Assembly (NCBI GenBank): GCA_965202585.1
Contig: OZ241830.1
Coordinates: 6,944,001 to 7,008,000, forward strand
From: Thalia democratica
Taxonomy: Eukaryota
DNA length: 64,000 nt
Reading direction: 5' to 3'
The notes beneath the pieces are model-generated. The model was not told the origin of the DNA. It saw nothing but the letters and a program-made list of their open reading frames with translations, and did not search any database. The first letter of the stretch is position 1; each line of letters opens with the position of its first letter. Shown in pieces: positions 2,628 to 63,276 of the stretch. The position numbers were made by a program, and so were the translations under genes.

Positions 2628-3555
2628 ATGGCCGTTAGTTTTTCATCTAAAACAACACAAATTTTGTACCACAATAGATTCTGTGGACAAGAAAACTTTG
2701 ATGTAATTATTTCTGGAAGCACTGATGTGTTAGAACGAGAAAGTTTAAGGTTAAACTCGCGTAACTTAGAAATAATTGAGACTATATATCTTTCAAAGAA
2801 ACATTCATACAATGACTTAACAATTTGTGAAAGATCCTATGTTTGGACTGTCTGCTCAAAATTAGATGTTAAAGGCGAATCTGAAACACGATCTTCATTC
2901 AGGATTTGTAGTGATAAAACTGACCAATGGGTTAATGTAGTTCAAATACCTGACGGTAAAGGTAACTTTAGCGCTTGTTCGTTTATGAAAAACATTTACG
3001 TCTTTGGTGGATTTACTGAAGAAAGAGGTATAAAAAGTTGTTATAAATATGATACAAAAAGGAAAAAGTGGATATTTATAGCAAGTATGAATGAATGTAG
3101 GCAAAATGCAGCTTGTACAGTATTTGAAGGTAAAATTGTCTTGACTGGTGGTTACCATTGGTTTGGTGGAAGTAGGAGCTCAATGGAGGCATATGATTGT
3201 TACGAGAATAAATGGGACTTTCTGCCTCGCATGATTAACAAAAGATGTCTACATGGAGCTGTTTGTATGGGCAACAAGCTGTTTGTCATTGGTAGAGAAA
3301 AATGCTACTTGCGAGGTTTTTGATAGCAGCTCCATGAAGTTCACTAGTATCAAGCGGTTGGATCGCAATTGTTATTATTCTGTTTCCGCGGTCAGTGTTG
3401 GTGGCGAAATTTTGATTTTTGGTTCAGGGTATATGGCAGGAAAAGAAAATATTTGCACTTATAATGTTGACAAAAATGAATGGTACTGTAAAAGTAATCG
3501 TTTTAAGCAATTCAAAAGAGGTTTAGTATGTCATGCAAAGCTTTCTGTTATTTAA
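2628..3555 (+). pseudogene. K1: Kelch-only beta-propeller gene (N1-CA type) with a frameshift in blade 5
   Basis: ORFs 2628-3323 and 3253-3555 join into one paralog-length Kelch protein (NIYVFGG, KIVLTGG, KLFVIG, EILIFGS). GGTAGAGAAAAATGCTACT at 3291-3309 is 19 nt against 21 nt in paralogs. The shift lies at an A5 run, so a sequencing error is possible. Confidence 0.85.
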
Positions 3556-5049: not shown

Positions 5050-5176
5050 TGTTATAACAGAAATAGAAAGAGTTCTCACTTATAATGTTGACAAAAATGA
5101 ATGGTACTGTAAAAGTAATTGTTTTACGGAATTTGAAGGAGGTTTAGTATGTCTTGCAAAGCTTTCTGTTATTTAA
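5050..5176 (+). pseudogene. Orphan 3' fragment of a CA-type Kelch gene
   Basis: Encodes ERVLTYNVDKNEWYCKSNCFTEFEGGLVCLAKLSVI-stop and is followed by the normal CA 3' flank. There is no upstream coding part. Confidence 0.9.
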
Positions 5177-6765: not shown

Positions 6766-7725
6766 TTAAATAACAGAAAGTTTTGAAAGACACTCAGTAT
6801 ATCCAAAATTAAAATAACTAACACCTTCAGATTTCCATTCATTTTCCTCAACATTATAAGTGAAAATTCGTTCTACATCTACTTTTTCACCTGAACAAAA
6901 TATTAAAATTTTGTCACAAATACTGACTGCAGAAACAAATTTGAAACAACTAAGTTCTAAATGCTTGATACTAGTGAACTTCATGGAGCTGCTATTAAAT
7001 ACCTCGCAAGTAGCATTTTCATTTCCACCAATCACAAACAGCTTGTTGCCCATACAAACTGCTCCGTGTAAATATCTTTTGTTGATCATACAGGGCAGAA
7101 AGTCCCATTTATTCTCGTAACAACCATATGCCTCTACTGAGTTTAAATCTACTTTACTTTTACCGTCGTAACCTCCAGTTAAGACAATTTTACCTTCGAA
7201 TACTGTACAAGCTGCATTTTGCCTAAACTTGTTCATGCTGGCTATGAAATTCCACTTACTCCTTTTTGTATCATATTTATAACAACTTTTTATAGCTCTT
7301 TTTTCAGCAAATCCACCAAAGACATAAATGTTTTTCATAAACGAACAAGCGCTAAAGTTGCTTCTATCATCAGGTGTTTGAGTTACATTAACCCATTGGT
7401 CAGTTTTATCAAGATAAATCCTGAAGGAATCAACAAGCTTGTATTTATCTTTTAAATTAGCTTTGCCGTTAATGGGGAATCTGGAGCAAACAACCCAAAC
7501 ATTGGATCTTTCACAAATTGTTAAGTCACTGTATGAATGTCTATCTGAATGATATATAGTCTCAATTATATCTAAGTTACGCGGGCTTATTCTTAATATT
7601 TTTCCTTCCTTAGAGTGTTTTAACACAGCAGTGCTTCCAGAAATGATTACATCAAAGTTTTCTTGTTCACAGAATCTATTCTGGTACAAAATTCGTTTTA
7701 TTTTAGATGAAAAACTAACAGCCAT
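6766..7725 (-). CDS. K2: Kelch-only six-bladed beta-propeller protein, 319 aa (N2-CB type)
   Basis: Intact ORF with Kelch GG/Y/W signatures (IYVFGG..CYKY..W, IVLTGG..VEAY..W, LFVIGG) and AAAATGG start context. Confidence 0.92.
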   Translation of the reverse strand: MAVSFSSKIKRILYQNRFCEQENFDVIISGSTAVLKHSKEGKILRISPRNLDIIETIYHSDRHSYSDLTICERSNVWVVCSRFPINGKANLKDKYKLVDSFRIYLDKTDQWVNVTQTPDDRSNFSACSFMKNIYVFGGFAEKRAIKSCYKYDTKRSKWNFIASMNKFRQNAACTVFEGKIVLTGGYDGKSKVDLNSVEAYGCYENKWDFLPCMINKRYLHGAVCMGNKLFVIGGNENATCEVFNSSSMKFTSIKHLELSCFKFVSAVSICDKILIFCSGEKVDVERIFTYNVEENEWKSEGVSYFNFGYTECLSKLSVI

Positions 7726-8982
7726 TTTAAACCTGTAACTTTGGTTTATTTAAATTTACAGTAACTCATGAGGCTTTTTATATTGGATTTAGTAGAATGA
7801 TTCAATTAAAAAAATATTTATTTTAGGTAGGATAATACACTTTTATGTTACTAGTGATATTTGGCTCTTTTTTAGAATGTAATGTATTTAAGTGTAAATA
7901 GTTTTAACTTATATGAGATATGAAAAATTGAATCTTAATTTTAACATTCTTAAAAAAATTTTAAACTTGTTAATTTACTTGTTTTGCAATTGCTTGATTA
8001 ATTTATAAAATTTGATAGTAGTTTAGTATACCAATATTAATTATACTTTGAAATAAACGAAATAAACTTATAATATAAGTTTTTAGTGTTGTCTAACATA
8101 CGTTAATATGTATTACGACTTTGTACAGCCTTAGCGTTGCAAATTTTTAAGCAGTAAACAAAATTATTTTAAACGTTTCATAAATAATTTCACCTAGTTC
8201 TCATATATAAACAAATACAGAGTAGAATATTTCAACTAAACAAATTATTTTAACTAAGTGTATTTTTAATTACTAAAACATTAAAAAACAAACAGTTGTA
8301 TAAAGTCTTTATTTTTTTAGCATAGTTATGTTTATTACTTGCAATATGAATAAACACAAAAATTCCTGTTATATAAGATTTTTTATACTGATTAAAACTA
8401 ACTATAGCTATTATGAGTTGAAATAGATAATTTTATGTTTATAGTATTGTTTAGATGTCTGCAAATGTAATGAAGTTAAGTTAACTGTTTTGGCTAATAT
8501 GAGTAGAAATGATAATTTTGAACCTTAAACTATAAACTTTAAAAGCATCTTGTTTCATTAATTAACTTAAAATCTGATTAATTTCTTCAAACACTTTCTT
8601 AAACTCTAAAATTGAATGTAACTTAAGAATATCAAGCAATTTTTCTTGTGCTTAAATTGTTATGGTTAAACATAATAGATTAATATGAATAAGCAAATTA
8701 AACAAAATACATATTATATAAAAAAAATCCCACAGATAGAAGTAAAAAATAGTTTCAGAAACAAAAATTATATGTTTGAATATTTAACCTGAACTTAAGT
8801 CTAATAAATAAGTTATGTTAAAAATATTAAGAATTAAAAAGAAACTGATGTGTAATTGGCCTCGTTTAGAAAATTTTAATAAAGTAAAATACACTAGTAT
8901 ATTACTAAATAAGCAACAATAAGGCAGTTATACAGCAGTCTACTGTGCTTTTTAAACTAATCGTTTATTTACGTAACTAGAA

Positions 8983-9680
8983 CGGGTAGCTGTCTAAATT
9001 GCACGAGGGTTCAAAACTGCACGAGTGCACAAAATTGCATGAAGATACTTTTGCACGAGGGGATAAAATTGCACAAAGATACTTTTGCACGAGCAGACAA
9101 CTTTTCACGGGTTAATTATATATATTTTTTTTATTAATTTAGTTTTTTTTTTCTATCACTGTTACCCCAAACCCTTATTCTCGGCCGGTAATTTTTTAAT
9201 TTCTTTTTGTTGACTTTTTTTATTTTAAATTTTTTATTTTGTTTTTTTAATTTTTTTTTTTTTAACTTTTTTTTATTCTACCACTGTTACCCCTAATCCT
9301 TACCCTCGGTCAGTAGCTTTTATTTTTTAATATTTTTTTTTAATTAATTATACTAGTTATTATTTTTTTTTTACTATCACTGTTACCCCTAAGCCTTACC
9401 CTCGGTCAGTCTTTCTTCTTTTTTTCATTAAAATATTTTCATATTTTATTTTTCTGTTTATTTTTATTTTTAATTTTTCTGTATTTTTTATATTTATTCT
9501 ATCTTTATTTTTTGACTCTCGTCAAAAAATGTAATTCGTGCAAATTTGACCCGTGGTGCAAAACCGTCATCGTGTAGTTTTGTTCCCTCGTGCAATTTTG
9601 TTCCCTGGTGCAATTTTGTTCCCTCGTGCAAATTAGTAACTTCGTGCAGTTTTGTCTTCGTGCAATTTAGACCCGCTCCG
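8983..9680. mobile_element. Non-autonomous DNA transposon (MITE), 698 bp, with 8-bp TSD AACTAGAA
   Basis: Imperfect TIRs CGG-N6/7-GTCTAAATTGCACGA, subterminal TGCACGA/TCGTGCA repeats, and AACTAGAA on both sides (8975-8982, 9681-9688). A paralogous empty site exists at 26102-26109. Confidence 0.85.
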
Positions 9681-11983
9681 AACTAGAACTTGGGTCGGCA
9701 GGTTTTTGTAGGTCGCAGTCAAATTAAAAAAAAAAATAGTTGATATGTTATTTTTTTATATTTCTCTTTTCAAACCCCGCAACGTAATCACTGAACGACA
9801 GAAAAGGCGTTTAAAAAATTTGGTCCAAAGACCCGGTGTACGAAAAAACCTTTTGCTTATCGAGTCGTACATCTGCATGAATTTTTTATACGTCTTGTCC
9901 ACTTTTTATAGTTATTTGTAATAAAGATCACTTTCATTTCTGCTTCTTTTCATCTTAATTTATGTGATTTTTAATCGCTCAAAAAATAATTAAATTTGAT
10001 TTTACTAAAATGTGTAATTAGTTCAATGTTTTTTACTGAAATAGTCTAGTGTTAAAATTTGCACTTTTGCCTAAAAATTGTTTACCATTTATTTTCTTGT
10101 GCTTTCTACTTTGTAAATTTTTAAATAATAGCATAACTTTCGGCTAAATACAACTTAAACAAAACCAAAAACTGCGAAAGTTCCTGTTAAAAAGTTGAAA
10201 CAAAATAAAATCGGTTTAAAAATTTTTTTTTATATCAATAAGATCTATAAACCTAGTTAAGTAATAATAATATATTATTAGCTTCTAATGTAAGCGTACA
10301 GTGTATTTATATTTCAAGTTTTGTGTAATAATTTTATATCGCCTAACATGTAATAAAAATAAAAAGTATTTTACTTTTACGATTTTATTTTTTATAAAAC
10401 AAGTTGGTGTCTGAAAATTAAGTTACTTATATAAAGTACTGTATATATTTCTTTCCCATATATATTTAGATAAAAAAGTACATGTCTGAGTTGGGCTCGT
10501 AAAAATGTTGTGAAGTAATTACCAACATAAACTAAAGTACTAAGTAAGTTAATATTTGTATTACATTGTCTTTTTAATATATTCTGAGTTTGCACTTACT
10601 TAAATTGTATTAAATGAAAAAATACGATTACATGTGTTTTCAAATATTTTAACCTTACGAGAGTTACAATTTGTTAAAAATTTTTAAAGGCGCACTTCTA
10701 ATAGCACCTTTAGTTTATTTTAATACCTCAAGAAACTAGCAACGATACAAACTAAAAAACTGTAACTTATTAATAATAGCCTACAACAACTTTGGTTCTA
10801 CAACAACAAAAAATACTAATTTTTAATTGAATGAATTAGCATACAAATAAAAAATATATTATAATATTTACAGCTCCTATTTTTCAGTGTTGTCTTTGGC
10901 TTCCTCGCTATAATAATGAATAAATTAATAAATACATTACCGTTCAGTTCAAAAAATTTTGAACATCTCAACATTCGGACTTTCTTCGAAATTAGCATTA
11001 TTTTAATAATAAATTTATTTAATGTATGTACATTCTTTGTATTCATATTTCAAACTTTTATCTAATTGTTCAACTTTGAAATTTTAAATTTATTAATTTT
11101 TTAAAAATTAGCTATAAAAGTTAATTTTAAATGATGTTTTTTGAGAAAATTAAAAAACAAAATTAAAATACAATAAAAAGTTGTATAAGTAGTTTAATAC
11201 AATAAATTTTCTTACTTAAAACGTATGTTTAGATTAAAAAACCAATCTGTAATCTGTATTAAAAAAAGCTGGTGTAAACTATTTTTTAATTTATATAAAA
11301 CAGCGTGAATAATTTTAATGTACAAGAACACACCTTAAGTTTAATTTTTCTATATTTTTGTAACTTCCTACCTACTGGTAAACAATTACATGGCTCTTAT
11401 TATTTATATTGTTTGATAGTTCTGTTAAACAAACAAAAACAATTTACTTGTTGTTTATATTTTGGCTTGAGAGATTATAGGTATGGAAGTATCAAGGTAG
11501 AGTGAGTAACTAAGTTTTTTGTGTTTATTTCTGAAACAGTTATAATTGTCAGATACTAATCTGTTGTTAGATTTTAAATGAAATGAGTTAAAACTATAAA
11601 AATCATTTACTATTAACTCTGTTTAAATTTTTTGTTTTGTTTTTAGTTTTAGAGTTAATAGTCTTACAATAATTTAAAGTATAGAAAAATTTCACGGTAA
11701 CCTAATGAACTAGTTAATACTATAAAGAGGTATTACAGAAATCAAAAATCTTTAGAAAGTTATATATTGGACATATATATATATATATTTCTAATGTTGT
11801 TATTAAAAGCAACTACAAAAAATATTCTATTTTTGAACAAAAACAATTGAGCTATTACACTAAAAAAATTATAACAAGCCCTTGGTACAAACATCTTACC
11901 TACTCTTTAGTTAATAAATAAGAATTTTCTAATTTTAACAAAAAAAATTAACTATAATTAGCTCAAAGTTTATCTATATAAAG

Positions 11984-12232
11984 CAGGGTTTTCCAAAGTG
12001 GGCCAAATGGCCCCCTTGGGGGCCATGACAGATACTTAGGGGGCTACGAGCAGCAAAGGGGTAAGAGTGGGGCCATGAGGTCATAACTTGAAATTTACAC
12101 TAGATATTTTTGAAATGCAGATGAAGAGCAAAAAAAAAGTGTTAGGTGTTTTTTATGATAGTTTATGAGTTATCTTGTTGAAGGGGGCCATGGCTTTTTT
12201 AACTTCTTTAAAGGGGGCCATGTGAAAAAAAG
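11984..12232 (+). mobile_element. Truncated hAT-type MITE (one TIR only)
   Basis: Starts CAGGGTTTTCCAAAGTGGGCC and carries repeated GGGGGCC subterminal motifs. The second TIR is missing, and the element joins directly to the Kelch upstream sequence AAACGTTCAAAAC. Confidence 0.75.
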
Positions 12233-12702
12233 TGAAACGTTCAAAACAATGAATTAAACTACTGCTTGATAATATACAATGCTAAGACTATAAAACGGCG
12301 TAATACATATTAATATATAATAGACAACACTAAAAAACTTATATTAAAGGTTTTTAAAATTTAATTAAAAATAGAATTAGTATTTTTAACAAAACTAGTA
12401 TAAGATTTTAAAAATAAATTAAGCAATTGCAAAACATCAACAACATTACAAGTAAATTAGTCAGTTTAAAAATCTGATGAGTGTGTTCAAATTAAGATTT
12501 AATTTTTAAAACTCAAACTGCCAAACCTCTTTGCACCTAAGTATTTTATTTATAAAAAGTCAAATATCACTAGTAACTTAAAAGTATACAATTCTTACAA
12601 ATAATTAATTAAAGTTTTTGATTGAATAGTTCTACAAAGTCAAATATTTCGTAACCACACAAGTCACTGTAAATTCAAATATACCAAAGTTGCAGGTTTA
12701 AA

Positions 12703-13635
12703 ATGGCAGTTAGTTCTTCATCTAAAGCAACACGAATTTTGTACCAGAATAGATTTTGTGAACAAGAAAACTTTGATGTTATTATTTCTGGAAGCACTAA
12801 TGTGTTAGAACGAGAAAGTTTAAGGTTAAACTCGCGTAACTTTGATAAAATTGAAACAATATATAATTCAAAGACACATTCGGAAAGTGACATAACGATT
12901 TGTGAAAGATCCAATGTTTGGACTGTTTGCTCAAGATTAGAAGCTAAAGGCGTATCTGAAACACGATCTTCATTCAGGATTTATATTGATAAAACTGACC
13001 AATGGGTTAATGTAGTTCAAGTACCTGACGGTAGAGGTAACTTTAGCGCTTGTTCATTTATGAAAAACATTTATGTCTTTGGTGGATTTACTAAAAAAGA
13101 TGCTTTAATAAGTTGTTATAAATATGATACAAAAAGGAGTAGGTGGATATTTATAGCCAGTATGAATAAGTTTAGGCAAAATGCAGCTTGTACAGTATTC
13201 GAAGGTAAAATTGTCTTAACTGGAGGTTACGACGGTAAAAATAAAGTAGATTTAAACTCAGTAGAGGCATATGATTGTTACGAGAATAAATGGGACTTTC
13301 TGCCTTGTATGATTAACAAAAGATGTCTACATGGGGCTGTTTGTATGGGCAACAAGCTGTTTGTGATTGGTGGAGATTACAGTGGTACTTGCGAGGTATT
13401 TGATAGCAGCTCCATGAAGTTCACTAGTATAAAGCAGTTAGAGCGCGATTGTTATTGTTCTGTTTCCGCGGTCAGTGTTGGTGGTAAAATTTTGGTTTTT
13501 GGTTCTTTTGGTTTGTTAGGAGAAGAAAATATTTGCACTTATAATGTTGACAAAAATGAATGGTACTGTAAAAGTAATTGTTTTACTAAATTCGAAGATG
13601 GTTTAGTATGTCTTTCAAAACTTTCTGTTATTTAA
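12703..13635 (+). CDS. K3: Kelch-only beta-propeller protein, 310 aa (N1-CA type)
   Basis: Intact ORF with six Kelch-like blades, the first two degenerate, and a C-terminal closing strand LVCLSKL. Confidence 0.92.
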   Translation: MAVSSSSKATRILYQNRFCEQENFDVIISGSTNVLERESLRLNSRNFDKIETIYNSKTHSESDITICERSNVWTVCSRLEAKGVSETRSSFRIYIDKTDQWVNVVQVPDGRGNFSACSFMKNIYVFGGFTKKDALISCYKYDTKRSRWIFIASMNKFRQNAACTVFEGKIVLTGGYDGKNKVDLNSVEAYDCYENKWDFLPCMINKRCLHGAVCMGNKLFVIGGDYSGTCEVFDSSSMKFTSIKQLERDCYCSVSAVSVGGKILVFGSFGLLGEENICTYNVDKNEWYCKSNCFTKFEDGLVCLSKLSVI

Positions 13636-15824
13636 CAGTTTAAAATTTCCATTTTGCCTGATATTTTTGATAAATATACAATGAGTATTACGTTGTTTGA
13701 AAACTTTATTTCATTTAAACTTATTTTAGTTTTCAAAATAAAAAAAATCTGTTACTGTTTGGTACTGACTTTTTTTTTGTAGTTTGAATACTTAGTTATC
13801 AATTGAAATTGTGGATATTGTTGTTTTTTTACTTGAACAATAAACAAAAAATTCAAAGATGATAGCATATTGTAACATCTAATATTAAACAAAAAAAAAA
13901 TTATAGTCAAATTAATAGCATTTTTTAACTGCGTTTTAGATTTTTTTCCGTTTTGATACATCTAAAAAGAATTTTTATCGTTAAGTTGTTTTTATAAAGT
14001 ATAAAACACTATATATTAAAATATTTTTGAAACGTTTATGTATTACATTGTGATATATAACCTCATTTAGTTCGACAGACTCAAAAGAAAAAAAAATTAT
14101 ATATTTTTGACATGTTTTACCAGAGATTAAAAGTTATATTACTTTAATCTGATAAATTATTTAGTTCTATGTTTATTAATTAACTTTTAATCATAAAATG
14201 TAATACGCTTTAAATTAAAAGTTAATGGTTACTATTTACTAAGCGAAAATGGTATTATACTTGTTTAATGACTTTTCTGATTTTTTTTTAATATTTAAAA
14301 CTGATATCTAAGTTATAGATATAAACTACATATCTTTTTAGCTAAAATGTAGAAATACTTAGTTTAGCTTGATATAAACAATTGTGTAGTAGTGAAGATT
14401 ATCTTAAAAATTATTATTATGGTGTTGAAGTTTTAAGAGTAAAGCTTTATTTTGTATTTCACTAAAAACTTTACAGTGAATTAAAAACAAATTTCCAGTA
14501 AAAATGTAAAAACAAGTAATTTAAAATAGGTTTTAAAAAAAACTTATCAAAGCTTGCTAAATTTTGAAAAGCGTCTACTTAAATGATCAATTATAAAATC
14601 TTTCATTATTAAGTTATTTTTGTTTTAAGAAAGTGTAAAATCGTATTTTATCGTAATCTTTGCTGTTGAGTACATCCAATGTCTGTTTATTAAAAGTAGC
14701 TATACCTCAGCGCTACAAAATGGAGGCAAACAATAAAAATATAAATTATTTTTGATTAGTTTACAACTATAGTGCTTAAAATATTGTGTAAGTTTAATCA
14801 ATTATAAGAAGACTTTTATTTAATCGGCTCATTAAAAAGAAGCATTGTGTAAAAGCTAGTTCGTCAAAAACACTATAAAACTTTAACACTACAACATAAC
14901 TGAAGTTTTATGTGAAATTGTTTTAAATAATATTTCTTAAAAATATATTTATAGAACTAATTCTAAAAACAAGACTTTTTCTTTAAGTGTATTTAAATGT
15001 TATCACAATTTCATTCTTTATAGTCATACCAACAAAATATTTTTATTTTAGCCAATAAAAAAGAATAAGATTGAACGAAGACATTATTTAAACATATTTT
15101 ATAAAATGTACTCTTAAAAATCTAAATAAAATGTAATCTTACACCATGTCAAGGTGTTTTTAAGAATGAGTTTTTAAAAAAAATCTATAATATTTATCAC
15201 AAAAATTAAACCTACGACTACTTTATACTTAATCAACTAACATTTTGTTTTTAAATAAATAATTCTGGTTAATGACGTAAACGTTTTCAACATATATGTC
15301 AACTTCAAAATCTAATTTATGAACAAAATCATTTACAGAAATATACTCAAAGACAGGTTAAGCCATTTTAAAAGATTTCAAAACATTCCACAAGAAGTAC
15401 TTCAGATGATCTATTTCAATCATCTATAAATACAAACAATTTTGTTTATCATTTTTAATTGTTTATCATTTGTATATCATAGAAAAATTATTTTTTCTAA
15501 ACTCGATGACTTAGAGTTTCCTTTGTAGACATAAGATCAAACTTTTTGAGCATTTTGTTATCGTTAGATAAACAATACTTCAGAATAAGGTTTTTATTTT
15601 TTTAAACTTTTATTCGTAAGGCCCCTAAAAAGAAATAAAAAAATCTATGGCCCTCTCCGAAAATATTTCTTAAAAAGAATACCATTAAATACGCCTAAGA
15701 CTTTTTTTTTTTTGCATTTTATCATCAACTCCAGGATATCTAGTGCAAGTTTCAAATAATGTCCTAGTGGCTTCTTCCTTTGCAGCTTATTATAAACTAA
15801 TTAACATATATAAACTTATTACTA

Positions 15825-16460
15825 ACTAAGAGTATCGAACACCCCGCGCAAAGCGCGCTTTTAAGCTAGCAAATAAAAGAAAATAAATAATATTATAATT
15901 AAAAATATTAGAATAAAAGTAGAAGTTTTTAAATTTTTTACTAATTGTCAAACATTACTAAAAAATTCTTAAAATTTAAGAAAACAGTTATTTAAACTAA
16001 GCATAAGAACATAATAAGTTTCAAACAGAGACTAAAAAAAGAAGGAAAATAACTTAATATATCTATTTATTTTATAATAAAACGAGTTGAAATACTAATA
16101 GTTTATAATAAATTTCTTTGAGTATCGCACACCGCAAGCTAAACGTGCTTTTGTGCTAGCCGATGAAGGAAAAAAATAATATTGCAAAAGTTAGTAATTT
16201 TTTAATTATCGAATACTCTCGAAAAATCTTAAAGTTTTAGGAAACTGCTGTTTAAACTAAGCATTAAAACAGGATGATGAAAATGGTGTTTCAACTTTAA
16301 ACAGATCTATATTCGTTAAGATAAATTCCTACCTTAAAAAGCTCCGCTTTCATTCGATTTTACTTCGCAAGGGGAGGCACGCTTCGCGCGCTATCGGTTT
16401 GGGCTTCCATGCCTCGAAAGCTGGGCTTTCTTCGTACTGTTAAGCCTCAGAAAGCTCCGC
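15825..16460. repeat. GC-rich GCGC hairpin motifs followed by CTAG, in tandem ~290-bp units
   Basis: CGCGCAAAGCGCG-cttttaag-CTAG near 15845-15870 and a degenerate second unit near 16125-16160. Duplicated at about 56005-56620. Resembles a Helitron 3' end or a promoter element. Confidence 0.45.
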
Positions 16461-18982
16461 TTTCTTTGTACTGCTGTATTTGTTTTTACTTAACCATCCC
16501 GCCCACCTCAAAAATTATATCAAATACATATTTCAAACTATTTTATAAATTCTTTGAAATTCATGTTACGTCACTAACTCTTCCAGATGTCTGTTTTAGT
16601 CGGCACAAAATCGTTCAAAAAAGTTTATAAAATATTTGTATAAAATTATGATAAATTTATTTTCGACTTAACTATTAAATTAAATATCTTTGGAACTTTA
16701 CTTGAAAATTACTGTTATAATTGAATAGCGTTAATTGTTAAAAAATAAAAGTATTTTACGTTTAAGAATTAAATAAAAAGTAACACAACTGTAATAACTA
16801 ATAGATAAAGCAGAGAAAATATATGTGCTACAAAAAGAAATCACTTGAAAAACAAGCCTGTGTCCATACCAATAAGTAATAAATACTTTTTCGGTTCAGA
16901 TTTAATAATTTACTTTTGTATTATGTTTTTGTTTACAAACAGGACTGGCTTAAAACTTTAAAAGAGCTTTTTGTAATTAAATAAAGTTTTTGATAAAACT
17001 TTAATCCGTTTGCAAAGTTTGGCTGTTAAGAAAAATTATGTCTGAAACATTTTGAACACATAAAGCTGTATTGTGTTCAAAATTACAATAAATTTTTAAA
17101 CTAGTTCAAGCATTGCAAAAGACTAAAACCATTCAACTATGCATTCAACGATCGGCTTTGCCGAGGGATAAGTCCTACTTACCAATTGACTAATATTTCT
17201 CTCTACAATTCTTAAGTTCTTATTGGTATATGGTGAATCAATTATCGGTAAATCCAACATAGAGGACACCTACCCTATGATGGCTCTGCTTGTTTCTTTT
17301 TTACAGCCCATTTCGTTTATATTGATTGTAAAATTTATTAAAAAAAATGTTTATTTTCTACTGTTTATTATGACGTAAGAGAACGAACGATTCTAGTTTA
17401 GTAGAAATGTTATTTTTAAATTTAGTGCAGCATAATAAAGCTATAAATTCCAGAATGAGTTTTAGAAACTGCACTTATCCAATTCCTTTAAAAATCAACA
17501 CAAAAAGTGTTGTATATTTTTTATTTTCAACGCAGTATAAACAACTAATCTGAGTAAAAAGTAAAATGCTGCAGTAAAATTTGTTTGCTCTAAACTTTTA
17601 CACTAAAACATTTGTAGGTGTATGTAAGTAATTTTGTTATATTTTTTTAGATTTTGTCTCCTATGTAAAACTAATGCGATCTTTTTAGGCAAAAGTGCAA
17701 AGTTTAACAATAGACTATTCTAGTAAAATTAGTAACAATTTTAAAACAAATTGAATTATAACAAATTGAATTAGATTAATGTCATTTGTCAAATACAAAC
17801 ATAATTTAAATCTAGAACCTTCTAAAAATATATAAATTATATCTATACCTAGAAATGTATCGAAATGGAATTGATATTTGAATTTAGACCAAGAATCAAC
17901 GAAACTCAAAGTCACTGTAAATTTGATAATTTATTTTGTATTAAACTAATGTAACAGCCAAAAATTAAATGGATTTAAGAACTATGAGAAAAAAGCTCTA
18001 AAGCCACGTCTTGATTGAATTTAAAAAATCTAAAAGTATATAAAATATTTTTTTTTTCTTTCATTTGTCGAAATTACGATAGCTAACAAAAAAATTAAGC
18101 AAGCAAATCAAAATCAACAATTTTATCTAAAAAACTTTAGCAATAATTTCAACACTTTTGTCGTGAATAGACTATACTGGTTTTCATTGAAATCTAGTCT
18201 TATTAGAATCCAACAAGCTAAATTTCAAGTATTTAGCTTATATTTCAGTAAGAAAAAAATGTAGATTTAATAATATGCGTAATCTACATGTAATAACAAA
18301 GTAAAATTAAAACAGCAATTAAATTAAAAGACTATAAAAAAAGCTTTATTAAAGTTTTATAATGGTTCAAAATAAGGTACGTAGAGTCTTTCAAAAAACT
18401 GTTATAAGTTTTCAAAAAATTACCCTAAAATTTCAAGTAAGTAGTTTAGATAAGATATTGTAATGATTAAATTAGCTTTTTTAACTATTTTTTCACACCT
18501 GACTTTCAATACGCAAAAATATTTTACCTTTAACTAATAAAACACATTTTAATTTTGTTAATTCTTTAAAATCCATATTAGATGAAGAAGTGTTTTTATA
18601 ACTACAACAAGCTTGAAAATGTTCTACATTTTATCTTTGAATTTATACATTGAATATTAATGATTAAAAGTTCAAAGAACAACTACCTAATTATAACTAG
18701 TTATATACAACAATATATGAACATTTAGCTATAAGATAAACACTTAAACGCTAATGATGTTTTAATAACAAGAGTAATAACTAAACTATTAACAAATCAT
18801 AAATATGCACTTATATTTTTATTTTCTATTACAAAATAAAGAGAAAAAAAAACGAACACAACAACAGTATGCATTTAAAACTAAGTTTGTAAATTACAAA
18901 ATGTTTAAACATAAATCAGTACCTAACAACATAATTATGTACATTTCATATTATTATTAGACAACAAAAGTAATTTTTATTG

Positions 18983-19920
18983 TTAAATAACAGATAGTTT
19001 TGAAAGACACTCATTATATCCAAAATTAAAATAACCACTTCTTTTAGATTTCCATTCATTTTTGTCAACATTATAAGTGAAAATTCTTTCTACTCCTACA
19101 TTTTCACTTGAACAAAATACTAAAATCTTTGCTCCAATACAGACTGCCATACGTATGTATAATAACTTTGATCCAACTGCTTGATACTAGTGAACTTCAT
19201 GGAGCTACTATCAAATACTTCGCAAGTAGCAATCTTCTCTCCACCAATGACAAACAGCTTGTTGCCCATACAAACAGCCCCATGTAGACATCTTTTGTTG
19301 ATCATGCGAGGCAGAAAGTCCCATTTATTCTCGTAACAATCATATGCCTCTACTGATCTTAAATCTACTTTATTTTTACCGTCGTAACCTCCAGTTAAGA
19401 CAATTTTACCTTCGAATACTGTACAAGCTGCATTTTGCCTACATTCATTTATACTTGCTATAAATATCCAATTTTTCCTTTTTGTATCATATTTATAACA
19501 ACATTTGAGGGATGAGTCAGTATATCCACCAAATACATAAATGTTTTTCATAAACGAACAAGCGCTAAAGTTTTCTCTACCATCAGGTATTTGAACTACG
19601 TTAACCCATTGGTCAGTTTTATCACTATAAATCCTGAATGAAGATCGTGTTTTAGATTCGCCTTTAACTACTAATCTTGAGCAAACAGTCCAAACATTGG
19701 ATCTTTCACAAATTGTTAAGTCGTTGTATGAATGTTCCTTTGAATGATATATAGTTTTAATTATTTCTAAGTTACGTGAACTTAATCTTAATATTTTTCC
19801 TTCCACAGAGTGTTTTAACACAGCAGTGCTTTCAGAAAAAATAACATCAAAGTTTTCTTGTTCACAAAATCTATTTTGGTACAATACTCGTGTTGTTTCA
19901 TATGAAAATTTAACTACCAT
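18983..19920 (-). pseudogene. K4: Kelch-only gene (N3-CB type) with a 1-nt deletion near 19149
   Basis: ORF 19920-19120 goes out of frame after YTYV. The shifted frame continues AVCIGAKILVFCSSENVGVERIFTYNVDKNEWKSKRSGYFNFGYNECLSKLSVI to the normal stop at 18983-18985. Confidence 0.85.
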
Positions 19921-21973: not shown

Positions 21974-22934
21974 TTAAATAACAGAAAGTTTTGAAAGACA
22001 ATCAAAATCTCTAAAATCAAAAAAAATTATTACCTTCAGACTTCCATTCATTTTTGTTAACATTATAAGTAAAAATTCTTTTTACTCCTACTTTTTCACT
22101 TGAACAAAATACTAATATTTTGTCACCAACGCAGATTGCAGAAACGTATGTGAAACAACTGAGTTCTAACTGCTTGATACTAGTGAACTTCATGGAACTG
22201 CTATCAAATACCTCGCAAGTAGCAATCTTCTCTCCACCAATGACAAATAGCTTGTTGCCCATACAAACTGTTCCGTGTAGAAATCTTTTGTTAATCATGC
22301 AAGGCAGAAAGTCCCATTTGTTCTCGTAACAATCATATGCCTCTACTGAGCTCAAACTTAATTCATTTTGACCATCGTAACCACCAGTTAAGACAATTTT
22401 ACATTTGAATACTGTACAACCTGCAAATTGCCTATATTCATTCATTTTGGCTATAAATATCCACTTACTTCTTTTTGTATCATATTTATAACAACTTATC
22501 ATAGCTTCTTGTTCAGTAAATCCACCAAAGACATAAATGTTTTTCATAAATGAACAAGCGCTAAAGTTTCTTCTATCATCAGGTGTTTGAATTACGTTAA
22601 CCCATTGGTCAGTTTTATCAAGATAAATCCTGAACGAATCAACAAGCTTGTATTTATCTTTTAAATTAGTTTTGCCGTTAACGGTTAATCTGGAGCATAC
22701 AACCCAAACATTGGATCTTTCACAAATTGTTAAGTCATTGTATGAACGTCTCTTTGAATGGTATATAGTTTCAATTATTTCTAAGTTACGCGAGTTTAGT
22801 CTTAATATTTTTCGTTCCTCAGAGTGTTTTAACACAGCAGTGCTTCCAGAAAAAATAATATCAAAGTTTTCTTGTTCACAAAATCTATTCTGGTACAAAA
22901 TTCGTGTTGTTTTAGATGAAAAACTAACTGCCAT
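21974..22934 (-). CDS. K5: Kelch-only protein (N2-CB type), +1 frameshift in a T8 run about 14 codons before the normal stop
   Basis: The paralog-matching ATG is at 22934 (the longer predicted ORF start at 23018 is not conserved). Removing one T at 22019-22026 restores FFDFRDFDCLSKLSVI and 319 aa, the same length as K2. Confidence 0.75.
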
Positions 22935-32301: not shown

Positions 32302-33243
32302 ATGGTAGTTAAATTTTCATATGAAACAACACGAGTATTGTACCAAAATCGATTCTGTGAACAAGAAAACTTTGATGTTATTTTTTCTGAAAGCACTGCT
32401 GTGTTAAAACACTCTGTGGAAGGAAAAATTTTAAGATTAAGTTCACGTAACTTAGAAATAATTAAAACTATATATCATTCAAATGAACATTCATACAATG
32501 ACTTAACAATTTGTGAAAGATCCAATGTTTGGACTGTTTGCTTAAGATTAGTAGTTAAAGGCGAATCTAAAACACGATCTTCATTCAGGATTTATAGTGA
32601 TAAAACTGACCAATGGGTTAATGTAGTTCAAATACCTGATGGTAGAGAAAACTTTAGCGCTTGTTCGTTTATGAAAAACATTTATGTATTTGGTGGATAT
32701 ACTGACTCATCCCTCAAATGTTGTTATAAATATGATACAAAAAGGAGTAAGTGGATATTTATCGCCAAAATGAATAAATTTAGGCAATTTGCAGGTTGTA
32801 CAGTATTCAAAGGTAAAGTTGTCTTAACTGGTGGTTACGATGGTAAAAATGGTGTAAATTTGAGCTCAGTAGAAGCATATGATTTTTACGAGAATAAATG
32901 GGACTCTCTGCCTCGCATGATCAACAAAAGATGTCTACATGGAGCAGTTTGTATGGGCAACAAGCTGTTTGTCATTGGTGGGGCTTACAATGTTTCTTGC
33001 GAGGTTTTTGATAGCAGTTCTATGAAGTTCACTAGTATCAAGCATTTAGAGCGCAATTGTTATCAGTTTGTTTCCGCGGTCAGTTTTGGTAGTGAAATTT
33101 TAATTTTTGGTTCAGGGTTTAGAGCAGGAAAAGAAAGAATTCGCATTTATAATGTTGACAAAAATGAATGGTACTGTAAAAGTGATTGTTTTAAGCAGTT
33201 TGAAGGAGGTTTAGTATGTCTTTCAAAGCTTTTTGTTATTTAA
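32302..33243 (+). CDS. K6: Kelch-only beta-propeller protein, 313 aa (N3-CA type)
   Basis: Intact ORF. The N-terminal ~147 aa differ from K4 at only 2 positions. Confidence 0.92.
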   Translation: MVVKFSYETTRVLYQNRFCEQENFDVIFSESTAVLKHSVEGKILRLSSRNLEIIKTIYHSNEHSYNDLTICERSNVWTVCLRLVVKGESKTRSSFRIYSDKTDQWVNVVQIPDGRENFSACSFMKNIYVFGGYTDSSLKCCYKYDTKRSKWIFIAKMNKFRQFAGCTVFKGKVVLTGGYDGKNGVNLSSVEAYDFYENKWDSLPRMINKRCLHGAVCMGNKLFVIGGAYNVSCEVFDSSSMKFTSIKHLERNCYQFVSAVSFGSEILIFGSGFRAGKERIRIYNVDKNEWYCKSDCFKQFEGGLVCLSKLFVI

Positions 33244-43015: not shown

Positions 43016-43187
43016 TTAAATAACAGAAAGCTTTGCAAGACATACTAAACCTCCTTCGAATTGCTTAAAACGATTACTTTTGACACCAATCTATAATAAA
43101 AACACCCTCTCCACCAATGACAAACAGCTTGTTGCCCATACAAACAGCTCCATGTAGAAATATTTTGTTGATCATGCGAGGCAGAAA
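43016..43187 (-). pseudogene. K7: internally deleted CA-type Kelch remnant
   Basis: About 43107-43187 matches the LPRMIN..LHGAVCMGNKLFVIGGE segment and 43016-43080 the KSNRFKQFEGGLVCLAKLSVI-stop segment. The intervening blade-6 part is missing, and the CA 3' flank follows in inverted orientation. Confidence 0.85.
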
Positions 43188-45968: not shown

Positions 45969-46910
45969 ATGGCAGTTAGTTTTTCATATGAAACAACACG
46001 AATTTTGTACCAGAACAGATTTTGTGAACAAGAAAACTTTGATGTTATCATTTCTGGAAGCACTAGTATGATAGAACGAGAAATGTTATGGCTAAACTCG
46101 CGTAGCTTTAATAAAATTAAAACAATATACTATTCAAAGACATATTCAGACAGTGACAGAACGATTTGTGAAAGATTTAATGTTTGGACTGTTTGCTAAA
46201 GATTATATGAGAAAGGCGAATCTAAAATACAACCTTCATTTAGGATTTATATTAATAAATCTCACAATTGGTTTAATATAGTAGAAACACCTGAAGTTAG
46301 AAAAATGTTTAGCGCTTGTTCATTTATGAAAAATATTTATGTCTTTGGTGGAATTACTGAATAAGGAGCTATAAAAAGATGTTATAAATATGATACAAAA
46401 AGGAGTAAGTGGATATTTATAGCAAGTATGAAGGAATGTAGGCAATTTGCAGGTTGTACAGTATTCGAAGGTAAAATTGTCTTGACTGGTGGTTACGACG
46501 GTCAAAAAGTTGATAATGATGTAAGTTTGAGCTCAGTAGAGGCATATGATTGTTACGAGAATGAATGGGACTTTCTGCCTCGCATGATCAACAAAAAATG
46601 TCTACATGGAGCAGTTTGTATGGGCAACAAGCTGTTTGTCATTGGTGGAGAGAAAAATTCTACTTGCGAGGTATTTGATAGCAGTTCCATGAAGTTCACT
46701 AGTATCAAGCATTTAAAGCGCGATTGTTATTATTCTGTTTCCGCGGTCAGTGTTGGTGGCGAAATTTTAATTTTTGGTTCAGGGTATATAGCAGGAAAAG
46801 AAAGAGTTCGCACTTATAATGTTGACAAAAATGAATGGTACTGTAAAAGTAATAGTTTTAAGCAATTTGAAAGAGGTTTAGTATGTCTTTCAAAACTTTC
46901 TGTTATTTAA
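45969..46910 (+). pseudogene. K8: Kelch-only gene (N1-CA type) with two in-frame TAA stops
   Basis: Frame is preserved over 942 nt, with TAA at 46197-46199 (Ser/Leu in paralogs) and 46362-46364 (Gln in K5 and K11). The conserved upstream CAG is changed to AAG. Confidence 0.9.
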
Positions 46911-48488: not shown

Positions 48489-49415
48489 TTAAATAACAGA
48501 GAGTTTTGAAAGACACTCAGTATATCCAAAATAAAAATAACTAATACCTTCAGATTTCCATTCATTTTTGTCAACATTATAAGTAAAAATTCTTTCTACT
48601 CCTACTTTTTCACCTGAACAAAATGTTAAAATTTTAACACAAATACAGACTGCAGAAACATATTTGAAACAACTTTGATCTAAATGCTTGATACTAGTGA
48701 ACTTCATGGAACTGCTATCAAATACCTCGCAAGTAGCATTTTCCTCTCCACCAATGACAAACAGCTTGTTGCCCATACAAACTGCTCCATGTCGACATCT
48801 TTTGTTTATCATGCGAGGCAGAAAGTCCCATTTATTCTCGTAACAATCATATGCCTCTACTGAGCTCAAACTTATATCATTATCACCGTCGTAACCACCA
48901 GTCAAGACTATTTTACCTTTGAATACTGTACAACCTGCAAATTGCCTATATCTATTCATTTTAGTTATAACTTTCCACTTGCTCCTTTTTGTATCATATT
49001 TATAACAACATTTGAAGAAACAGTTAGTAAATCCACCAAAGACATAAATGTTTTTCATAAATGAACAAGCGCTAAAGTTACCTCTATTATCAGGTGTTTG
49101 AACTACATTAATCCATTGGGCAGTTTTATCAATATAAATCCTGAATGAAGATCGTGTTTCAGATACGCCTATAGCTTCTAATCTTGAGCAAACAGTCCAA
49201 ACATTGGATCTTTCACAAATCGTTATGTCACTGTCCGAATGTGTCTTTGAATTGTATATTGTTTCAGTTTTATCAAAGTTACGCGAGTTTAACCTTAAAC
49301 TTTCTCGTTCTAACACATCAGTGCTTCCAGAAATAATAACATCAAAGTTTTCTTGTTCACAAAATCTATTCTGGTACAAAATTTGTGTTGTTTTAGATGA
49401 AGAACTAACTGCCAT
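48489..49415 (-). CDS. K9: Kelch-only protein, 308 aa (N1-CB chimera)
   Basis: Intact ORF with a K3-like N-terminus and upstream region and a K2-like C-terminus and downstream region. Confidence 0.92.
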   Translation of the reverse strand: MAVSSSSKTTQILYQNRFCEQENFDVIISGSTDVLERESLRLNSRNFDKTETIYNSKTHSDSDITICERSNVWTVCSRLEAIGVSETRSSFRIYIDKTAQWINVVQTPDNRGNFSACSFMKNIYVFGGFTNCFFKCCYKYDTKRSKWKVITKMNRYRQFAGCTVFKGKIVLTGGYDGDNDISLSSVEAYDCYENKWDFLPRMINKRCRHGAVCMGNKLFVIGGEENATCEVFDSSSMKFTSIKHLDQSCFKYVSAVCICVKILTFCSGEKVGVERIFTYNVDKNEWKSEGISYFYFGYTECLSKLSVI

Positions 49416-54072: not shown

Positions 54073-55032
54073 ATGGCAGTTAATTTTTCATCTAAAACAA
54101 CACGAATTTTGTACCAGAATAGATTTTGTGGACAAGAAAACTTTGATGTTATTTTTTCTGGAAGCACTGCTGTGTTAAAACACTCTGAGGAACGAAAAAT
54201 ATTAAGAATAAGCTCGCGTAATTTAGAAAAAATTGAAACTATATATCATTCAAAGAAACGTTCATACAGTGACACAACAATTTGTGAAAGATCCAATGTT
54301 TGGGTTGTATGCTCCAGATTACCCGTTCGCAGCAAAACTCATCTAAAAGATAATTACAAGCTTGTTGATTCGTTCAGGATTTATCTTGATAAAACTGACC
54401 AATGGATTAACGTAATTCAAACACCTGATGATAGAAGAAGCTTTAGCGCTTGTTCGTTTATGAAAAACATTTATGTCTTTGGTGGATTTACTGACTCACC
54501 ACTTAAACGTTGTTATAAATATGATACAAAAAGGAGTAAGTGGAAATATATAGCCAAAATGAATAAATATAGACATAATGCAGCTTGTACAGTATTCAAA
54601 GGTAAAATTGTCTTGACTGGTGGTTACGATGGTAAAAATAAAGTAGATTTAAACTCAGTAGAGGCACATGATTGTTACGAGAATAAATGGGATTTTCTGC
54701 CTCGCATGATCAACAAAAGATGTCTACATGGAGCAGTTTGTATGGGCAACAAGCTGTTTGTCATTGGTGGAGAGGAAAATGCTACTTGCGAGGTATTTGA
54801 TAGCAGTTCCATAAAGTTCACTAGTATCAAGCAGTTAGATCGCGATTGTTATTATTCTGTTTCCGCGGTCAGTGTTGGTGGTAAAATTTTGATTTTTGGT
54901 TCAGGGTTTAGAGTAGGAGAAGAAAGAATTCGTTCTTATAATGTTGACAAAAATGAATGGTACTATAAAAGTAATTGTTTTACGGAATTCGAAGGAGGTT
55001 TAGTATGTCTTGCAAAGCTTTCTGTTATTTAA
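54073..55032 (+). CDS. K10: Kelch-only protein, 319 aa (N2-CA chimera)
   Basis: Intact ORF with a K2/K5-like N-terminus and K2-like upstream region, and a CA-type C-terminus. Confidence 0.92.
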   Translation: MAVNFSSKTTRILYQNRFCGQENFDVIFSGSTAVLKHSEERKILRISSRNLEKIETIYHSKKRSYSDTTICERSNVWVVCSRLPVRSKTHLKDNYKLVDSFRIYLDKTDQWINVIQTPDDRRSFSACSFMKNIYVFGGFTDSPLKRCYKYDTKRSKWKYIAKMNKYRHNAACTVFKGKIVLTGGYDGKNKVDLNSVEAHDCYENKWDFLPRMINKRCLHGAVCMGNKLFVIGGEENATCEVFDSSSIKFTSIKQLDRDCYYSVSAVSVGGKILIFGSGFRVGEERIRSYNVDKNEWYYKSNCFTEFEGGLVCLAKLSVI

Positions 55033-62343: not shown

Positions 62344-63276
62344 ATGGCTGTTAGTTTTTCATCTAAAACAACACAAATTTTGTACCAGAATAGATTTTGT
62401 GAACAAGAAAACTTTGATGTTATTATTTCTGGAATCACTGATGTGTTAGAACGAGAAAGTTTAAGGTTAAACTTGCGTAAGTTTGATAAAACTGAAACAA
62501 TATACAATTCAAAGACACATTCGGAAAGTGACATAACGATTTGTGAAAGATCCAATGTTTGGACTGTTTGCTCAAGATTAGATGTTAAAGGCGTATCTGA
62601 AACACGACCCTCTTTCAGGATTCATATTGATAAAACTGACCAATGGGTTAATGTAGTTCAAACACATGATGGTAGAGGTAACTTTAGCGCTTGTTCATTT
62701 ATGAAAAACATTTATGTCTTTGGTGGATATTTTGAACAAGAAGCTATAAAAAGTTGTTATAAATATGATACAAAAAGGAGTAAGTGGAATTTTATAGCAA
62801 TTATGAATGAATGGAGGCAAGTTGCAGCTTGTACAGTATTCGAAGGTAAAATTGTCTTGACTGGTGGTTATGACGGTGAAAATAGAGTATATTTAAACTC
62901 AGTAGAGGCATATGATTGTTACGAGAATAAATGGAACTCTCTGCCTCGCATGATCAACAAAAGATGTCGACATGGAGCAGTTTGTATGGGCAACAAGCTG
63001 TTTGTCATTGGTGGAAAGAAAAATGCTACTTGCGAGGTATTTGATAGCAGTTCCATGAAGTTCACTAGTATCAAGCATTTAGAGCGCGATTGTTATTATT
63101 CTGTTTCCGCGGTCAGTGTTGGTGGCAAAATTTTGATTTTTGGTTCAGGGTATATAGCAGGAAAAGAAAGAGTTCGCACTTATAATGCTGATAAAAATGA
63201 ATGGTACTGTAAAAGTAATTGTTTTACGGAATTCGAAGTAGGTTTAGTATGTCTTGCAAAGCTTTCTGTTATTTAA
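62344..63276 (+). CDS. K11: Kelch-only beta-propeller protein, 310 aa (N1-CA type)
   Basis: Intact ORF, close to K3 in the N-terminal half. Confidence 0.92.
   Translation: MAVSFSSKTTQILYQNRFCEQENFDVIISGITDVLERESLRLNLRKFDKTETIYNSKTHSESDITICERSNVWTVCSRLDVKGVSETRPSFRIHIDKTDQWVNVVQTHDGRGNFSACSFMKNIYVFGGYFEQEAIKSCYKYDTKRSKWNFIAIMNEWRQVAACTVFEGKIVLTGGYDGENRVYLNSVEAYDCYENKWNSLPRMINKRCRHGAVCMGNKLFVIGGKKNATCEVFDSSSMKFTSIKHLERDCYYSVSAVSVGGKILIFGSGYIAGKERVRTYNADKNEWYCKSNCFTEFEVGLVCLAKLSVI

Follow-up and report, generated by a model that had tools for sequence, protein, structure and literature searches.

The Kelch propeller genes of this locus differ from copy to copy in their loops, and the question is what drives the loops apart: a preliminary description, drawn from the nucleotide sequence, had proposed diversifying selection on a ligand-binding face. 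The locus was studied within the window, i.e. the whole stretch of 64 kb that was analysed, which has a G+C content of 25%.

The window contains ten near-full-length Kelch paralogs (K1 to K10) and two relic fragments. The paralogs are intronless, encode about 310 amino acids, lie on both strands at a spacing of 4 to 13 kb, and share a core repeat unit of approximately 1.6 kb, which extends from about 470 nt upstream to about 200 nt downstream of the ORF and shows 78-91% identity among copies. Six of the ten copies are intact: K2 (6766-7725, minus strand, 319 aa), K3 (12703-13635, plus strand, 310 aa), K6 (32302-33243, plus strand, 313 aa), K8 (48489-49415, minus strand, 308 aa), K9 (54073-55032, plus strand, 319 aa) and K10 (62344-63276, plus strand, 310 aa). 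The remaining four are disrupted or truncated: K1 (2628-3555, plus strand) is a pseudogene frameshifted by a 2-nt deletion within the blade-5 GG codons, K4 (18983-19920, minus strand) is a pseudogene frameshifted by a 1-nt deletion in blade 6, K7 (45969-46910, plus strand) is a pseudogene with two in-frame stops, and K5 (22000-22934, minus strand) is truncated at its C-terminus and lacks the closing strand. The relics comprise a C-terminal Kelch fragment on the plus strand (5066-5173, detected by tblastn) and Kelch fragments on the minus strand (43019-43187, detected by tblastn and blastn). The intergenic DNA (8200-12200, 14000-17300 and other stretches) is a patchwork of segments that recur elsewhere in the window with 68-89% identity; no non-Kelch ORF of at least 150 aa was found in these intergenic stretches, and scanning the window for Rfam families and tRNAs gave no match. 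Approximately 6% of neutral substitutions create a stop codon, so that 2.8 to 6.3 stops are expected per unconstrained lineage at the observed silent divergence. As six copies are free of stops, their reading frames are maintained by selection.

The K3 gene, an uninterrupted ORF, encodes a stand-alone six-blade Kelch propeller. A Pfam search of the protein returned Kelch families only (Kelch_1, E = 2e-27 and 94.8 bits, gathering score 20.1; Kelch_KLHDC2_KLHL20_DRC7, 76.4 bits, gathering score 50) and no match to BTB. An AF2 model based on a 65-sequence alignment (pLDDT 87, pTM 0.86) displays, according to DSSP, 24 strands arranged in six blades, with a C-terminal strand (residues 303-308) that closes blade 1; in the 1+3 closure described for Kelch propellers the C-terminal beta-A strand is joined to the N-terminal beta-B, C and D strands (PMC6720452). 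The best natural Foldseek matches of the model were the Kelch domains of KLHL17, KLHL12, KLHL2, KLHL3 and KEAP1 (TM 0.77/0.83), and phmmer and Foldseek agreed in placing the Kelch domains of KLHL17, KLHL12, KLHL2, KLHL3, KLHL20 and KEAP1 nearest to K3.

Only 23 residues precede the K3 propeller. Longer homologs from metagenomes possess a BACK domain, and the first 105-188 residues of these BACK-bearing proteins had no tblastn match within the 64-kb window; an upstream exon beyond the window is conceivable. The short N-terminal segment of K3 contains a DSSP helix (residues 8-18, 12724-12756, plus strand). Within the whole family, conservation is highest in the helix motif LYQNR.C (residues 8-20, 12724-12762), which aligns directly behind BACK in the longer homologs: Y14, R17 and C19 are invariant in the 65-sequence family, and L13 and Q21 are conserved in more than 90% of it. 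The helix may function in docking or as a structural cap. The BC-box pattern is L-x3-C, and a reading of the helix as a BC-box was dropped because the L13-x5-C19 spacing, checked by eye, is unlike it. A Kyte-Doolittle scan, the sole method applied to this point, revealed no signal peptide or transmembrane segment in K3; the N-terminus is hydrophilic, and the only hydrophobic peak corresponds to the blade-6 strands. On account of this hydrophilic N-terminus and of the lack of a transmembrane-like segment, K3-type proteins are predicted to be cytosolic, and a role as cell-surface allorecognition receptor is unlikely for proteins having neither a signal peptide nor a transmembrane segment.

Directly 5' of the ATG start codon, all ten copies carry the nearly invariant, acceptor-like sequence TTACAG/GTTTAAA (12690-12702 in K3, plus strand), which is also present in the Tara relatives L002 (4574-4616) to L006, whose protein identity is only 67-69%. 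This element looks like a splice acceptor, possibly one for a spliced leader. The interval between its AG and the ATG contains no in-frame stop, so an upstream coding exon joined ahead of the ATG is conceivable.

In order to locate the variation, each residue was assigned to one of the strands A to D or to an AB, BC, CD or DA loop on the basis of the DSSP string of the AF2 model, and the faces were assigned from the strand topology and published Kelch structures, in which the upper, substrate-binding face is made up of the BC and DA loops (PMC3597819, PMC6720452). The variable loops were thereby identified as the BC and DA loops of a six-blade Kelch propeller, an assignment from the preliminary description with which the AF2 model and the Foldseek matches agree. 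The entropy of these top loops was 0.80-0.88 bits among the window paralogs and 2.95 bits in 58 database homologs, versus 0.31-0.33 and 1.78 bits for the strands and 0.35-0.40 and 1.94 bits for the bottom loops (AB and CD). Among the window paralogs, the top loops differed from the strands (Mann-Whitney, p = 1.5e-10) and from the bottom loops (p = 8e-4), and the difference between bottom loops and strands was not significant. The variation is therefore specific to one face, the bottom-face loops being as conserved as the strands, and the clustering of variable sites on a single face that had been put forward as a check on the recognition hypothesis is indeed found.

Variability was strongest in the BC loops of blades 3, 5 and 6 and in the DA loops of blades 5 and 6. 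The blade-3 BC loop (K3 residues 129-136, 13087-13110, plus strand) is the most variable of all, with an entropy of 1.55 bits and changes in eight of eight columns; it occurs as eight different sequences in the ten copies, in line with the variability among paralogs noted before, adjoins a one-codon indel and includes the candidate codons 132-133. Also on the plus strand are the BC loop of blade 5 (residues 225-229, 13375-13389; entropy 1.25, five of five columns variable), the DA loop of blade 5 (residues 244-253, 13432-13461; entropy 1.06), the BC loop of blade 6 (residues 268-276, 13504-13530; entropy 1.11) and the DA loop of blade 6 (residues 291-302, 13573-13608; entropy 1.27), the last of which falls into two types. 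The blade-2 BC loop (residues 77-90, 12931-12972, plus strand) has up to six states per column, and its loop types, separated by a 6-codon indel, include the candidate codon 80. The blade-4 BC loop (residues 176-186, 13228-13260, plus strand; entropy 0.59) had likewise been listed as variable. This is correct for about four to five central positions only; the rest has the canonical form YDG...L.S, which agrees with the consensus Kelch loop of the PDB alignment. Every peptide quoted in the preliminary description is present and could be assigned to a copy; several of the listed variants, though real, come from the disrupted copies K1 (FTEERGIKS, YHWFGGSRSS), K4 and K7. The strands, described as near-invariant, deserve this term in blades 3 to 5 but are less conserved in blades 1, 2 and 6; FSACSFMKNIYVFGG is identical in ten of ten copies, and GAVCMGNKLFVIGG is found in eight of ten.

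The strands had also been called homogenized, which the silent sites contradict. In a tree-free count, the minimum number of synonymous steps per codon was 0.36 in the strands and 0.34 in the top loops, and the pairwise dS in the framework is about 0.2. Since the strands have undergone as many synonymous changes as the loops, they are kept alike by purifying selection and not by homogenisation of the DNA or concerted evolution. Exchange between copies is nevertheless frequent. The trees of individual blades are mutually discordant, and a separate tree for each blade improved the codon-model lnL by 577 units; in a PHI-like test, neighbouring informative sites were more compatible than expected (0.41 versus 0.57 +/- 0.009 after shuffling, p < 0.0005), and Rmin is 48. 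Every copy is thus a mosaic, and recombination is pervasive. Copies K4 and K6, which share the identical blade-3 loop YTDSSLKC, cluster in the trees of blades 1 and 3 and not in those of blades 4 to 6, a pattern that fits a young inverted duplication or a conversion tract with an end inside the gene. Two types of 3' flank (K2, K4 and K8 versus the rest; 13636-13875 in K3) track the C-terminal types defined by the blade-6 BC and DA loops, so the units of exchange reach into non-coding DNA.

Selection was tested on the ten copies of the window by three approaches, with GY94 maximum likelihood (ML) computed by our own code, which reproduces the IQ-TREE lnL of -4505.14. The tree-free pairwise method of Nei and Gojobori (NG86) gave an omega of 0.99 for the top face (bootstrap 0.68-1.47) and of 0.40 for the rest of the protein, with 1.47 for the BC loops, 0.64 for the DA loops and 1.23 (0.51-3.77) for the three loops listed in the preliminary description. 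GY94 ML on blade-wise trees gave 1.08 for the top face (profile approximately 0.88-1.33), 0.30 for the rest, 1.18 for the BC loops (p = 0.18 against 1) and 0.98 for the DA loops; in a five-class fit, the bottom loops had an omega of 0.36 and the strands of 0.28. A tree-free minimum-step count compared with neutral expectation yielded 0.88-1.05 for the top face, 1.18-1.35 for BC (p = 0.13-0.34), 0.63-0.80 for DA, 1.23-1.28 for the three listed loops (p about 0.33-0.36), 0.37 for the strands and 0.48-0.53 for the bottom loops. The ML estimates were unchanged when the 44 indel-adjacent columns were left out (top 1.10, rest 0.31). In the top loops, dN (0.29) is similar both to dS (0.22-0.29) and to the extent to which the upstream flank has diverged (0.23). 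An omega of 1.32 for the BC loops (p = 0.013), obtained by ML when recombination was ignored, is spurious. The top face therefore evolves close to neutrally (omega about 1.0-1.1) and the scaffold is under purifying selection (omega about 0.3). The diversifying selection proposed for the loops was thus not borne out by recombination-aware estimates, which lie around 1 and not above it.

Site-level tests were strongly dependent on how recombination was treated. With one tree for the whole gene, the comparison of M1a with M2a gave a 2dl of 38.8 (p = 4e-9) with 8% of the sites at omega 3.5, and all sites with a posterior above 0.8 were located in BC or DA loops. The 2dl was 32.2 with two segments, 5.6 with three, 5.06-8.25 with six blade trees (chi-square p = 0.08), 23.4 with seven segments shifted by half a blade, and 5.2 with twelve half-blades. 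Residue 80 of K3 retained a posterior of 0.84-1.0 in every segmentation tried, and residues 132-133 in the blade-3 BC loop had posteriors of 0.6-1.0 that varied with the segmentation. Data simulated on the inferred mosaic trees served as calibration. Null data analysed on a single tree gave 50% false positives, with a maximum 2dl of 27.9 in 28 runs, all of which were exceeded by the observed one-tree value; with local trees, null data never exceeded 2.98, whether the true trees (28 runs) or re-inferred trees (14 runs) were used, so that the observed blade-tree value was above 42 of 42 simulations. When 8% of the sites were simulated at omega 3.5, the 2dl was 17-74 (31-58 with re-inferred trees), which excludes selection of this strength given the 5-8 observed; with about 6% of the sites at omega 2.5 it was 0.4-24, a range that spans the observed values and makes such a weak class compatible with the data. 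Strong pervasive diversifying selection is hence rejected, while weak positive selection is possible at a handful of codons, mainly residues 80 and 132-133 of K3. This codon-level signal is inseparable from recombination within blades, and recombination on a scale finer than the blades is likely.

The protein search yielded 58 homologs, of which two (P0001 and P0002) were traced, mostly in Tara Oceans metagenome assemblies; marine metagenome runs also contain parts of the window sequence, and a search for it among RNA runs returned no match. Tara Oceans and Logan contigs with P0001 agree completely over 4 kb, flanks included; they are probably the same data and are uninformative on polymorphism. 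The four contigs L003, L004, L005 and L006, taken from separate ENA and Logan records, differ over about 4 kb in homopolymer lengths only, and probably represent the same Tara data reassembled or a clonal population. The Tara relatives, being only 60-70% identical to each other, are too diverged for a replicate dN/dS analysis. A scan of JGI metagenome contigs for paralogs recovered one locus, with 32% identity. DNA runs of the source organism provided contigs of about 100 nt only, whose depths add up to thousands and in which alleles are indistinguishable from paralogs; over the blade-3 and blade-6 loops, these contigs showed clustered alternative letters, to which the same restriction applies. 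Their summed depth rises to 12,000-17,000 over the region coding for AACTVFEGKIVLTGG (13155-13211), compared with a few hundred in the flanks, which implies that a very large number of copies across the genome have this segment in common and fits a very large family.

The array copies resemble the KLHL adaptors of CUL3 (KEAP1, KLHL2, KLHL3, KLHL12, KLHL17 and KLHL20), which provide the best matches in sequence and fold, in their six blades closed by a C-terminal beta-A strand, their GG doublets and their canonical YDG...LNSVE BC loops. Among KLHL paralogs, too, the BC and DA loops of the substrate face are the variable elements (PMC3597819, PMC6720452). Unlike KLHL proteins, however, the array copies have no BTB, BACK or 3-box and thus no evident means of recruiting CUL3, and their genes are intronless, arranged in tandem and inverted arrays, and frequently pseudogenized. 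A BTB-less propeller that constitutes the whole recognition module is also found in KLHDC2, KLHDC3 and KLHDC10, the stand-alone Kelch substrate receptors of CRL2; these are conserved single-copy genes with a C-terminal BC/Cul2 box, whereas the array sequences are closest to KLHL and have, as judged by eye, no helix spacing of the BC-box kind. Lineage-specific tandem expansion, birth-and-death and substrate-surface variation are shared with the MATH-BTB, F-box and plant F-box-Kelch families, for which a role against pathogens has been proposed. In the nematode MATH-BTB and F-box adapter families positive selection has reportedly been demonstrated, in work by Thomas in Genome Res in 2006. These families retain a ligase-docking domain, which the array copies lack, and an omega above 1 was not robust to recombination in the array.

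The explanation that we prefer, and hold with slightly more confidence than doubt, is that of a birth-and-death array of maintained cytosolic Kelch propellers, having a constrained scaffold and a ligand face that is reshuffled and nearly neutral. Each gene of the array would produce a cytosolic six-blade propeller of the KLHL type on its own, devoid of BTB and BACK; selection keeps the reading frames open and the scaffold folded (omega about 0.3), and the BC and DA face drifts apart between copies almost neutrally (BC about 1.2-1.5, DA about 0.6-1.0). Recombination or gene conversion shuffles the blades and so provides each paralog with its own combination of loops, resulting in a set of propellers that share a scaffold but differ in their candidate binding surfaces. 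The divergence of the top face would stem mostly from weak or absent constraint, with at most about 6% of the codons, chiefly in the blade-2 and blade-3 BC loops, being subject to weak positive selection. The proteins presumably bind ligands via this face and, because BTB is absent, may operate as free-standing binders or as decoys, or may attach to other machinery through another element, e.g. the invariant N-terminal helix. A few codons may truly be under positive selection, as the M2a gain with blade trees exceeds all 42 null simulations and reaches 23.4 with the shifted segmentation. A mean omega of about 1 over 122 top-face codons, conserved structural positions included, implies that some sites evolve faster than neutral.

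The hypothesis of pervasive diversifying selection on the top-face loops, with the array serving as an innate-immune, allorecognition or host-parasite recognition repertoire, agrees with the restriction of variation to the binding face, with a large, fast-turnover family rich in pseudogenes, with the precedent reportedly offered by the MATH-BTB and F-box adapters (Thomas 2006), and with a residual signal that persists with local trees. We regard it as somewhat unlikely, since the one-tree result, for all that its candidate sites are confined to BC and DA loops and its value surpasses 28 of 28 single-tree nulls, comes from a test with 50% false positives on mosaic null data; the class omega is about 1 by three methods, the three listed loops give 1.23-1.28 without significance (p about 0.33-0.36), and a blade-tree gain of 5-8 is incompatible with 8% of the sites at omega 3.5. 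The lack of a signal peptide or transmembrane segment further speaks against a surface allorecognition receptor, and there is no BTB for coupling recognition to CUL3. At the other extreme, the top face might have no sequence-specific role, its loops drifting under purely relaxed constraint as long as the fold is kept, in which case the copies may act by another surface, act by dosage only, or be decaying. A top-face omega indistinguishable from 1, a loop dN close to dS and to the flank divergence, the disruption or truncation of four of the ten copies, and the fact that conservation within the family peaks in the N-terminal helix and not in a loop are all in favour of this, yet some loop positions are conserved, so that other sites must be faster for the mean to be 1, the local-tree M2a gain exceeds the null simulations, and a scaffold omega of 0.3 is hard to explain if the binding face is irrelevant; we consider it quite unlikely. 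Finally, hypervariability could be an artefact of pseudogene copies and misaligned, indel-rich loops, considering that the disrupted K1, K4 and K7 supply some of the listed variants and that codons 132-133 adjoin an indel. This reading is largely refuted and in our view very improbable: the pattern is unchanged when only the seven undisrupted copies are considered (top loops 0.80 bits, strands 0.31 bits), and the omega values are maintained after removal of the indel-adjacent columns.

Beyond this locus, the array is a clear illustration of how badly recombination inflates naive site tests for positive selection in this fast-turnover family. No published account of such a Kelch expansion in tunicates was found in the literature searched. 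Going further than the near-neutral array that we favour, one may speculate, as an unlikely extension, that hundreds of BTB-less Kelch propellers provide this marine planktonic animal with a diversified repertoire for recognition inside the cell, in which a few top-face codons are truly diversifying, recombination between copies is a loop-shuffling generator of specificity (e.g. versus viral or parasite proteins), and effectors are coupled via the N-terminal helix. If the top face were adaptively diversified, the family would represent a novel type of recognition repertoire in animals, built from the substrate module of a ligase adaptor uncoupled from its ligase, and conceptually comparable to the adapter expansions of nematodes and plants.
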